From assembly GCA_964035545.1 (NCBI GenBank), contig OZ037771.1, forward strand, positions 8,239,408 to 8,303,407: a stretch of DNA of 64,000 bases, written 5' to 3'. A program made the position numbers and the translations under genes. The notes beneath the pieces were generated by a model, which saw only the letters and a list, made by a program, of their open reading frames with translations, had not been told where the DNA came from and searched no databases. Source of the DNA: Bugula neritina. Taxonomy: Eukaryota > Animalia > Bryozoa. Of this stretch, positions 25,195-43,667 are shown one piece after another (position 1 is the stretch's first letter; the number at the start of each line of letters is the position of its first letter).

Positions 25195-28100
25195 ATGATG
25201 GAAGACTCCACTACAACAACAGACCTTCTTCTACCTGATCTTTTTATTAGACAAGCCAAGACGACTCCTGACAAAGTTGCTGTTGTTTCTGAAAGAGGTA
25301 CAGTGTCTTATGATATAGTATAGCTTCAATTAGCTGCCGCTGTCTTGTAATGCTAGTGGCTAGTTTTCAGGACAGCGTCTGTTTATTTCTATTTGCATGA
25401 CAAGATTCATCACGTAACAAATATTGGTTGCCACATTTACAGATTTGCTTTGCGGAAAAACCATTGCACCTTTTCTAGTTACAAAAACCACTGCAATTAC
25501 TATGAAATAAATATCTACAGAGCTGAAGATTTTAAAGACAAGCAAATATTCCTAACTAAATCTAAGCTGCAAATGATTGCTTACCTGATTAATGACTTTG
25601 ATAAAAAAAGTTTAATTAAGTTAGACATTTATTAGCTTTAATTCTTTTTTTCAAATAGCTCAGATAACAGAAAAAAAATTTTCTCTTATGATTTTTCCAT
25701 GTACAACATAAACTAGCACGTGTGTAGTATGAATTGGTGATTTTATCGCAGGTAGCATGACCTACAAAGAATTGGATGAGGTAACTGACCTACTGTCACG
25801 TTATCTTAGACTAAAAGGTGTAGTAGGAGACAGCTGTGTAGGTATTTACATGGAGAAGAGTCTAGAATATGTCATCAGCTATATCTCAATACTCAAGGCT
25901 GGTGAGTGAGAACACAACTCTACTATGATTCTACATATGATGACGAGAGTTAGCTATAATAGTTGATGATTTGAAAAGTAGTTCAATCCATATAGCATTG
26001 CTTTTAAAATGCTATTGTTTTATCTTTACGTGCATATATTATAATATTTCAAAGTTGCTAAACTAGTCAGGCAAGTAGTATATCTAACAGGCTGTTTGTG
26101 TAGAACATTTTAATTTATAGCAATATTCATTGGTTAATATCTTCTAATTTATACAGTTTGAATTTTTCTGACAATGTATCTAAAAACATTTTCTTTGGTA
26201 GATAAAGAGTGTACTGTCGTATTTTAGGAGGTGCATACCTGCCACTGGATGTGGCCTATCCAAGTAGACTGTTTCATGAAATCATTCTTGACGCAACTCC
26301 AAAGTATATTCTATCTAAGACAGAGTATATCAACAACATGCATAGTATTAAAGGTGTGTGAAAGTCACTAAGTTAAACGCTTTTTTTGAACAGAATCTTT
26401 AGAGATGAGTTTTTAGAGGTTTCTACCTAATGCTAGTACAAATAGCATACAGTGCCTAAATAAAAGATGAAAAAGTTCAATAAATGTTTTTCTCTTATGA
26501 TAAAAAGCAGAGGTATATTAGATCCTGTGATAAAATAATGATATACTCAAAAATGTGCTTTGTGGCTTAAAGTAACATTGTCTATTGTAGTATTGCTTAT
26601 TCAACCTATTTGCTTATGAAATATAATATAATGTTTCTTTTTATTCTAACAGCCCTTAATAGTTTGTAGTGCCAATTTATTCCCATTAATTTAAAATTAT
26701 TTAAAATAGCTGATTATGCATCGAACTAGTAAATGATTCATGCAGTAAACTTTAATTTAGTAGTTTAATAAAAAGTCCATGTTTCATTAGACCAGTGTCT
26801 AGATATGACTGGAGAGTGGAGGAGTGAGGTAGAGAGGGAGCTGTTTCAAACTAATGTGCTACCAGAAGAAGAAAAACTTAGTCTAAGTAATCTGGCTTAC
26901 ATTGTTTACTCTTCTGGAACCACTGGCAAGCCAAAAGGTACTTACCAACTTGCAAACCGAGACAAATTTACATACTCTTTTTAATACTAACCGGTGTGTT
27001 TCATAGGTCTATTACTTGCATTCAACTGTTTGTTTGTATTTACTCAAAATAATATACATACATACTATATTGGCCATTATTTACAATTTCTAACTTATAT
27101 CTTTGGTATAATTTATTTGAGGTTTACAAGGTGAACTAAACTTTTATTTGTAATTTAACCAACAATTAAGAACATTTTTACCCGTTTCACTACAACGAAG
27201 TTTATGTAATTTATATAATAGCACACCCCTAATTATTTAATATAAATTCTGTTTTTGATATAAATATGTATTTGGATGCTAGCATAATGACACTCCATAA
27301 CATATTATATGTCAGTAGAGTATGCATATCTCTAGACTTAGCCTAATTTCTTCTCACTTCATAAAATAAAGCGCAATGTGCAGGTATCCAGTGTCCACAA
27401 AGAGGTGCGTTCTACAGCTACACCTGGAGACACAAGGCATATCCTTTTATAGAAGGAGACCGAGAAGCTTGCAATGTCTTCTTTGTGTGGGAAATGTTCA
27501 GACCTCTTTGCAAAGGTAAGAAAACTCTCTATCTCTGATGGTTGAAAGGTAAGAAAACTCTCTATATCTAATGGTTGAAAGGTAAGAAAACTCTCTATAT
27601 CTAATGGTTGAAAGGTAAGTAAACTCCCTGTATCTGATGGTTGAAAGGCAAGTAAACTCTCTATATCTGATGGCTGAAAGGTAAGAAAACTCTCTATATC
27701 TAATGGTTGAAAGGTAAGAAAACTCCCTGTATCTGATGGTTGAAAGGAAAGTAAACTCTCTATATCTGATGGCTGAAAGGTAAATAAACTCTTTATATCT
27801 GATGGCTGAAAAATGTGGCTGTAGGCTGCAGAAGTGAAATATTCTTTAAAATCTCAGCACATTGAGTTAGTTTACTGTTGGACTACTGAGTCAGAAGCCT
27901 ATATGTCAAAATATCAAGAGGTACTGGTCCAGCAGACACCTGCTGTGATAAGTTAGCAAATGAAGGAAATGTGATGAAAGGCATAGCACAGTATCCTGTA
28001 AGAAGCCATATTGCCAACATTTTTGTATCTTATATAGTGGGTATAGAAACCTACCTAGCTTATCATATCACAGAGTTTCTGATCGGGGAACACAAGTAAA

Positions 28101-43100: not shown

Positions 43101-43667
43101 ATTTGTTCTGTGCTTTCTATATCTACTGTGTACTTTCTACATCTATTGTATGCTTTCTATATCTACTGTGTGCTTTCTATATCTATTGTGTGGTTTCTAT
43201 ATCTATTGTGTGCAACATTAATATAATTTAACACAATTTTTTTATTCTCCAGCTGATTTATTCAAGTAAAAGCCAGGCTGCATGGCTCAGTGTAATTATT
43301 TCTTAGCCATCATTTTTATAAAACTTTTACCTATAAAAAATATTTCAAATTTTTGAATAACTTTTAGGCTGTTAAGTTTATTTGTCACATCAATAGATCA
43401 CATGATCATGCAATGGTGTGGGTATTGAGGTTTGCTAGTTCAGCCTATGCTAGTCAGGCATACGCTGTTGTAGGCAATGCCTGTACTGTGTCACTTCAAT
43501 GTAACTAATGGTGCATATTTTAGGCAAAGGAAAAGTATGATGGGAGTACACTCACTACTATACTCAACCCTGGGGATATCGGAAAAGCTATCGTATTCAT
43601 TGCGTCACAACCTAAAGCTGTTGCTATTAATGAGTTGCTGATAGAGCCAACTGGAGCCCCCATTTAG
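25195..43667 (+). CDS. ATRR: NRPS-like A-T-R-SDR enzyme (ATRR / glycine betaine reductase-like), 1278 aa, 25 exons: 25195-25297, 25752-25901, 26228-26353, 26791-26937, 27384-27515, 28205-28370, 28823-28976, 29733-29846, 30361-30579, 31017-31213, 31604-31792, 32261-32476, 33063-33198, 34259-34400, 35150-35351, 35900-36135, 36287-36443, 36730-36801, 39472-39534, 39849-40018, 40314-40522, 41100-41240, 41796-41888, 42931-43089, 43524-43667
   Basis: A-domain motifs [93 protein letters not shown] domain FFDLGGHSLLA. Thioester reductase [11 protein letters not shown]...IIHAAAYVN...YVST...GYSQTKW. C-terminal classical [12 protein letters not shown]...NNAG...SSDAG...YSGTK...INELLIEP. All 24 junction phases agree; total 3837 nt. 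Confidence 0.9.
27512..27812 (+). repeat. 33-bp minisatellite (AAAGGTAAGAAAACTCTCTATATCTAATGGTTG, 9 copies) starting at a splice donor
   Basis: The first copy is the real AAAG|GTAAG donor of ATRR exon 5; period 33 bp. Confidence 0.95.
28385..28795 (+). repeat. ~44-bp and ~35-bp AT-rich minisatellite filling an ATRR intron
   Basis: Repeated TATTACACTGTATTATATGATATAACATGTGTATGTACTGTATA. Confidence 0.85.
29110..29562. repeat. ~450-bp (TA)n microsatellite with ACATGT interruptions
   Basis: Direct reading; source of the spurious YIYIY ORFs. Confidence 0.97.
31831..32176. mobile_element. hAT-type non-autonomous DNA transposon (MITE)
   Basis: Perfect 14-bp TIRs CAGGGGTGTCCAAC / GTTGGACACCCCTG; degenerate 8-bp flanks AGCTTCAC / ACTTACAC. 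Confidence 0.75.
32654..32700. repeat. Perfect 22-bp inverted repeat with 3-nt loop
   Basis: ACTTGAAATGGTCAGCATAAGT-GAA-ACTTATGCTGACCATTTCAAGT. Confidence 0.95.
33632..33770. repeat. Degenerate (CA)n microsatellite
   Basis: Direct reading of the sequence. Confidence 0.85.
34505..34576 (+). pseudogene. tRNA-like sequence (tRNA pseudogene or tRNA-derived SINE head; TGC in the anticodon position)
   Basis: GCCTCTG...TGGGGGCA acceptor-like stem, A-box TAGTGTAATGG, mutated B-box GGTTTGATCC within a TGGGG/CCCCA T-stem; the anticodon stem pairs poorly. Confidence 0.6.
37333..37475. mobile_element. Degenerate short MITE/foldback, probable TAA TSD
   Basis: Arms TCTATAAGACGCTCCGAGTTGGTGGTGAATGAGTGCA / TGCACTCATTCACTACAAACTCGGAGCTGCTTATAGA; TAA at 37330-37332 and 37476-37478. 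Confidence 0.65.
41586..41790 (+). repeat. ~20-bp minisatellite (TATCACTGTATATACTATA) abutting a splice acceptor
   Basis: Runs up to the CTGCAG acceptor at 41795. Confidence 0.85.
41889..42373 (+). repeat. 25-bp minisatellite (GTAAGTGTAATGTTATATTATTAGT, ~19 copies) starting exactly at a splice donor
   Basis: The first GTAAGT is the donor of ATRR exon 23; every copy retains GTAAGT. Confidence 0.95.
42694..42882 (+). mobile_element. tRNA-derived SINE fragment
   Basis: Pol III A-box TGGCCTAAGG and B-box GGTTCGAACTCC at tRNA-like spacing, without a good cloverleaf, followed by non-tRNA body sequence. The 3' boundary is approximate. Confidence 0.55.
43092..43212 (+). repeat. 20-bp minisatellite (TGCTTTCTATATCTACTGTG) just after a donor
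   Basis: ~6 copies starting at the GTACTTTCTATAT donor of ATRR exon 24. Confidence 0.85.

Follow-up and report, generated by a model that had tools for sequence, protein, structure and literature searches.

A fused, intron-rich ATRR gene of ancient animal descent in the bryozoan Bugula neritina, a probable glycine betaine-to-choline reductase

A single gene on the + strand occupies positions 25195 to 43667 of a 64,000-nucleotide stretch of the Bugula neritina genome (assembly GCA_964035545.1, contig OZ037771.1, positions 8,239,408 to 8,303,407 of the forward strand; this whole stretch is called the window, and coordinates are given within it). The gene encodes a protein of the ATRR type, in which an adenylation domain (A), a carrier domain (T), a thioester reductase (R1) and a classical short-chain dehydrogenase/reductase (SDR; R2) are fused. 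It consists of 25 coding exons separated by 24 introns of 151 to 2670 nt, all of them bounded by GT and AG. The exons contain no internal stop and sum to 3837 nt, corresponding to 1278 amino acids and a stop codon. This total holds with acceptors at 26228 (exon 3), 28823 (exon 7) and 36730 (exon 18), which homologue alignments preferred to 26231, 28796 and 36739; the latter set would yield 1283 amino acids and was dropped. Run exon by exon, Pfam returned AMP-binding, AMP-binding_C, PP-binding, NAD_binding_4 and adh_short in that order, so that the A-T-R1-R2 succession by which Hai et al. 2019 (10.1101/559534) recognize ATRR lies in a single reading frame. A condensation domain, a feature of canonical nonribosomal peptide synthetases (NRPSs), is absent: there is no room for one, and full-length A-T-R-R homologues without it cover the exon chain from end to end. 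An earlier sequence-only reading of this DNA had described one continuous 25-exon frame with ATRR-type architecture and no condensation domain, and our data agree with it on each of these points.

The adenylation domain and the start of the carrier domain are encoded by exons 1–11 (25195–31792), namely 25195–25297, 25752–25901, 26228–26353, 26791–26937, 27384–27515, 28205–28370, 28823–28976, 29733–29846, 30361–30579, 31017–31213 and 31604–31792. Exon 12 (32261–32476) encodes the carrier domain, whose GGHS motif is interrupted by intron 11, with the codon of the phosphopantetheine-accepting Ser568 at 32265. R1 and a linker follow in exons 13–20 (33063–40018), located at 33063–33198, 34259–34400, 35150–35351, 35900–36135, 36287–36443, 36730–36801, 39472–39534 and 39849–40018. 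Intron 20 (40019–40313, phase 1) marks the R1/R2 boundary, and R2 is encoded by exons 21–25 (40314–43667) at 40314–40522, 41100–41240, 41796–41888, 42931–43089 and 43524–43667. The 3' untranslated region (UTR) spans 43668–44382, the end reached by RNA contigs, with an AATAAA signal at 44309. On the other side of the gene, a pyrimidine tract and an AG about 22 nt 5' of the start codon (25150–25194) suggest an upstream non-coding exon.

RNA contigs from four runs, belonging to four studies, were compared with the region 39472–44382 (exons 19–25 and 3' UTR). Since these contigs carry spliced joins, they represent transcripts. Introns 19–22 are spliced at the predicted sites in all four runs and introns 23 and 24 in three of them. 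The join from 40018 to 40314, on which the claim of one gene rather than two neighbours depended, is spliced in contigs of every run, and in three runs the whole stretch from exon 20 to exon 25 is covered by a single contig (1061, 1362 and 1725 nt). The RNA check of splicing holds for the junctions of exons 19–25 and, in one run, for the join of exon 18 to exon 19; the splices of exons 1–18 are predicted from frame, homology and shared intron positions. Thirteen of the 17 exonic differences listed between RNA and genome are silent, as fits a gene under selection. Over the region compared, contigs and reference show a few per cent of divergence in exons and several indels in the 3' UTR, which is consistent with a different population or a cryptic species.

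Relatives were collected by searching exon 6 against 1.84 billion proteins and then using full-length homologues as queries, the Bugula protein itself being compared exon by exon rather than as a joined spliced model. From exon 6 the search reached full-length A-T-R-R proteins of a psyllid, a starfish, a planthopper and others, and full-length relatives (about 1250–1320 amino acids) were found in about ten animal phyla, several protist groups and more than 100 fungi. The animals comprise placozoans, cnidarians, an acoel, a flatworm, nemerteans, annelids, molluscs, a brachiopod, nematodes, hemimetabolous insects, echinoderms, hemichordates and tunicates. For all 24 exons with a match, the best match is an animal ATRR, ahead of protist and fungal ATRRs. 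The highest summed score belongs to the nemertean Tubulanus, with 58% identity over matched exons; fungi reach about 43%. The anticipated grouping with ATRR is therefore borne out by the best matches, within a comparison set of ATRR homologues that left out Lys2 and CAR. A tree of 43 homologues, built without the Bugula protein by a quick method and rooted at the midpoint, groups 28 animal sequences together (SH-aLRT 83), with clades inside that correspond to phyla, and sets the fungi far off. Judged by these comparisons, the Bugula protein is an ATRR orthologue, a new member of a known family, and its gene is a common invertebrate gene that is not peculiar to Bugula. Vertebrate, fly, beetle, moth and C. 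elegans names are all missing from the matches listed (three lists of 120, from searches that were not aimed at absence), and loss of ATRR in some animal lineages is suggested. The PDB yielded no ATRR structure, its best matches being generic NRPS modules and SDRs.

The introns speak to the age of the gene. Orthologue introns were mapped by exact spliced alignment, a match being defined by the same phase and a position within one column. Tubulanus has 20 of the 24 Bugula introns, Capitella 16, Nematostella 17 and Trichoplax 17, compared with a chance expectation of 0.5–0.6 and a maximum of 4 in 2000 shuffles. Intron 20, at the R1/R2 boundary, has the same position and phase in all four. Since the shared introns include the one between the two reductases, the fused intron-rich gene is older than the divergence of placozoans, cnidarians and bilaterians. 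We conclude from these alignments that the fused ATRR gene is ancestral to most animals and vertically inherited, with no recent transfer.

In the Aspergillus nidulans enzyme (AN5318), the A domain adenylates glycine betaine and loads it onto the carrier, R1 produces betaine aldehyde and R2 converts the aldehyde to choline (10.1101/559534). The same study, using a homology model, assigned F201, W204, W270 and E304 to the pocket, and it probed Y811, G1036 and Y1178 by mutation. We mapped fungal residue numbers by reference to A. flavus ATRR, whose numbering agrees with that of A. nidulans at F201, W204, W270 and E304. Bugula preserves the carrier Ser568, the nucleotide-binding motifs of both reductases and the Tyr/Lys pair of each. 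The A10 motif supplies the catalytic Lys512 (PheA K517; 31629–31631). R1 has a TGxTGFLG nucleotide-binding motif in exon 13, Tyr827 (fungal Y811) at 35985 and Lys831, and R2 has Gly1044 (fungal G1036), Ser1173, Tyr1186 (fungal Y1178) and Lys1190.

The substrate pocket is conserved in part. At positions 235, 236 and 239 (PheA numbering), Bugula has Val207, Phe208 and Trp211 (27476–27490), at position 278 Thr250 (28294–28296), and at positions 299, 301, 322, 330 and 331 Trp278, Cys280, Leu304, Asp312 and Ile313 (28830–28937). As expected of an ATRR, the Asp235 that binds the alpha-amino group is missing, with Val207 in its place. The aromatic cage F201/W204/W270 is retained as Phe208, Trp211 and Trp278, and the acidic residue E304, at position 330, as Asp312. 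This residue is Asp in 65 of 66 animal homologues and Glu in all 107 fungal ones. The complete code reads V-F-W-T-W-C-L-D-I-K in Bugula and V-F-W-L-W-N-C-E-I-K in fungi. Only six of the ten positions are identical, which limits the transfer of fungal specificity but not family membership. Animal pockets in general differ from the fungal one at three or four positions. Cyst-nematode ATRRs (Heterodera and Globodera) read V-F-W-L-H-C-L-D-V, five differences from fungi, the number that Zhang et al. 2024 (PMC11050029) counted for plant-parasitic nematodes; this agreement serves as a check on our mapping. Two ATRR pocket types appear to exist across eukaryotes. Among protists, thalassiosiroid diatom ATRRs have the fungal-type N301/E330 and fall outside the animal-containing group of the tree, and those of cryptophytes, labyrinthulids and Perkinsus have the animal-type C301/D330.

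The retained pocket and catalytic residues make the reductive conversion of glycine betaine into choline the best account of the Bugula enzyme, as the sequence-only reading had proposed, and we hold it to be probable. Substrate, product, cofactor and physiological role would follow the fungal model. A host Sfp-type phosphopantetheinyl transferase (PPTase) would load phosphopantetheine onto Ser568; an exon with the WxxKESxxK motif of such an enzyme is present on chromosome 4, so that a host activator exists. The trimethylammonium group of glycine betaine would be held by the Phe208/Trp211/Trp278 cage beside Asp312 while the A domain, through Lys512, adenylates the carboxylate with ATP. The acyl group would then pass to the carrier thiol, R1 (Tyr827/Lys831) would use NADPH to release betaine aldehyde, and R2 (Ser1173/Tyr1186/Lys1190) would use a second NADPH to form choline. 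The product would serve phosphatidylcholine synthesis and betaine homeostasis. Support from an animal comes from MiATRR of Meloidogyne incognita, which relieved glycine betaine toxicity in yeast and gave a phenotype in RNA interference (RNAi) (PMC11050029). Taken with the cyst-nematode code, this relief suggests that a pocket with Asp at position 330 can accommodate glycine betaine even when its cage is poorer.

Several points weigh against this assignment. The Bugula pocket departs from the fungal one at positions 278, 301, 322 and 330, and Thr at 278 is unusual among animals too: Leu occupies this position in 105 of 107 fungal and 54 of 66 animal homologues, and no named full-length homologue has Thr. 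The evidence from the nematode consists of growth rescue and does not extend to detection of a product, and no assay of a purified animal ATRR was found in the literature searched, which covered few subscription journals. In our mapping, A. flavus stood in for A. nidulans, and Heterodera and Globodera for M. incognita. Finally, the A domain of BurA, a Burkholderia hybrid of NRPS and polyketide synthase (PKS), prefers dimethylsulfoniopropionate (DMSP) and carries Asp in its pocket (PMC7496086), and all BurA-like sequences that we matched have Asp at position 330.

These observations bear on the strongest alternative, in which the enzyme performs the same chemistry on a different or wider substrate, such as DMSP, beta-alanine betaine or another longer or sulfonium zwitterion of marine origin, and reduces it to an alcohol. 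We regard this as unlikely, though worth weighing. The fungal enzyme is reported to be strictly size-selective and rejects acids one carbon longer (10.1101/559534), and the animal Asp at position 330 is one methylene shorter than the fungal Glu, so that a longer acid could be admitted; Thr at position 278 in Bugula and the variability of position 299 among animals (W 40, I 8, V 6, L 5, H 5) are in keeping with this. The DMSP-preferring BurA domain has the same type of pocket, and the BurA-like bacterial hybrids were themselves found through exon 6. On the other hand, BurA-like pockets carry N301 and D322, which are not seen in animals, and R2 is strongly conserved with its fungal counterpart. 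The nematode enzyme that rescues yeast from glycine betaine is itself of the D330 type, and the code is likewise found in terrestrial insects and in parasitic nematodes, animals that would seldom be expected to meet DMSP. The more specific proposal, in which the animal pocket (C301/L322/D330, with T278 in Bugula) lets the enzyme reduce zwitterions that differ from, or go beyond, those of the fungal enzyme, DMSP or beta-alanine betaine for example, appears less likely still. Were it true, marine invertebrates would have an unrecognized reductive route for algal osmolytes.

Like A. nidulans ATRR, the Bugula protein has the A-T-R1-R2 order in about 1280 residues, lacks Asp235, keeps the cage and the three residues probed by mutation, and ends in E-x-L-I-E-P-x-x-x-P-I. 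It differs from fungal ATRRs in sequence, in having T278/C301/L322/D330 where they have L/N/C/E, and in the 24 introns of its gene, the A. flavus gene having none. MiATRR (1306 amino acids), which was studied in a parasite–host setting, is likewise an animal A-T-R1-R2 enzyme, and its cyst-nematode relatives share C301/L322/D330 with Bugula; at one pocket site (299 by our mapping), plant-parasitic nematodes have His or Ile where Bugula has Trp. The Tubulanus XP model, Capitella CAPTEDRAFT_168750, Haliotis XP_046369445 and Nematostella XP_048589182 have the same domains at 51–58% identity over matched exons, but Leu at position 278 where Bugula has Thr. BurA shares with Bugula an A domain of the onium-acid-binding type without Asp235 and with an acidic pocket Asp (PMC7496086). 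Its D606 corresponds to position 322 or 330, both of which are Asp in BurA-like sequences. In BurA, A-T precedes KS-AT-KR, whereas in Bugula it feeds two reductases, PKS domains are absent and the pocket has C301/L322 instead of the N301/D322 of BurA-like sequences. Bacterial-type TE-A-T-KS-AT-KR hybrids (domains checked in two) share the onium-binding motifs and are BurA-like by architecture only. Lys2, CAR, Ebony, AASDH and the mollusc FmtATR have the A-T core in common with ATRR, and Lys2, CAR and FmtATR each add one thioester reductase; going by their descriptions, we take all five to have no second SDR and other pocket codes.

A second alternative, which we consider improbable but which can coexist with betaine reduction, is that the locus gives rise to two products, a full-length enzyme or A-T-R1 carboxylate reductase and a stand-alone R2 of 251 amino acids starting at Met 40009 on a transcript that begins in intron 18. 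In one RNA run, the 89 letters 5' of exon 19 differ from exon 18, and the last 30 of them align in intron 18, ending at 37668 with GTAAGT directly after and scoring 40.5 where shuffles scored no more than 27; a genome search found no other match to this stretch. An AG acceptor at 37561–37562 would define a 106-nt exon on the + strand (37563–37668), or 88 nt given a deletion in the RNA contig. This candidate may be either a cassette exon that introduces a premature stop or an alternative 5' exon, and in the latter case would permit the R2-only protein. In favour of a separate R2, all four RNA contigs stop within 89 nt 5' of exon 19, the first ATG within exons 19–20 sits just 5' of R2 with A at −3, the fungal R2 is active alone when excised (10.1101/559534), and RefSeq has R2-only models for Mytilus edulis (251 amino acids, on a short scaffold) and Patella (204 amino acids, with the start of R2 missing). 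Against it, the join to exon 19 comes from a single contig in one run, another run joins exon 18 to exon 19, and contigs cannot reveal transcript starts. The aligned piece begins approximately at the AG acceptor, as a cassette exon would, and as a 5' exon the candidate has two short upstream open reading frames in the genome allele. The Met is also poorly kept, any Met within the 14 residues before R2 occurring in only 19 of 173 homologues.

NRPS-like domains are typically found in microbes and B. neritina hosts a bacterial symbiont, yet contamination, recent microbial transfer or a chance fusion of adjoining genes has almost no claim to belief and was rejected on the shared introns and the spliced RNA across R1/R2, most of the 24 spliceosomal introns lying at ancestral animal positions in a gene placed on chromosome 7 beside RPB1 and matched best by animals in every exon with a match. 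The host origin argued by the sequence-only reading is thus upheld.

If the fungal function holds, many invertebrate phyla would have an ancestral one-enzyme route from glycine betaine to choline, and choline oxidation would therefore not be one-way in those animals. This would be relevant to how marine animals turn over osmolytes and supply phospholipids, and to betaine sensitivity in pests. The novelty first attached to the gene was overstated, since Hai et al. had counted 25 animal orthologues (10.1101/559534, Fig. S1), MiATRR was tested in 2024 and NCBI already labels the Haliotis, Nematostella and Schistocerca copies 'glycine betaine reductase ATRR(-like)', in line with the earlier remark that ATRR-like sequences might be listed for other invertebrates. 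In its narrower form, that no animal ATRR has been assayed after purification, the accompanying statement stands in the literature searched. The betaine-to-choline idea is thus already published for nematodes, and the passages found from Suring et al. 2023 (PMC10531068) do not discuss ATRR; the shared-intron ancestry, on which no paper turned up in the literature searched, and a testable pocket contrast between animals and fungi are new here.

Within the genome, a full-length homologue matches lengthwise at the chromosome 7 locus only, which indicates a single copy. Upstream lies a papain-family cathepsin with an I29 propeptide (about 11.7–15.2 kb of the window) and downstream RPB1 (from about 47.6 kb), confirming the position first described between these genes, except that a gene-like stretch at 20426–21900, in which a lysine run comes after a hydrophobic segment and Pfam finds no match, also lies between the cathepsin and ATRR. 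A Ser/Pro-rich open frame of 358 amino acids at 6404–7480, likewise without a Pfam match, is probably a large exon of another gene. Searches of the genome for the homocysteine methyltransferase and PEMT families gave matches at the level of exons, not resolved to genes. On an unplaced scaffold (48198–49262, minus strand), an uninterrupted frame of 1153 amino acids with weak (24%) similarity to the adenylation domain is possibly a bacterial-type or transferred NRPS-like gene. The introns of the ATRR gene also carry repeats. Intron 18 contains a short inverted-repeat element (37340–37470) resembling a miniature inverted-repeat transposable element, with 55 other matches in the genome, many in oppositely oriented pairs. 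A highly repeated element in intron 23 (42700–42900), where contigs pile up to very great depth in every RNA run, resembles by eye a tRNA-derived short interspersed element, and another tRNA-like stretch lies at about 34500–34580.

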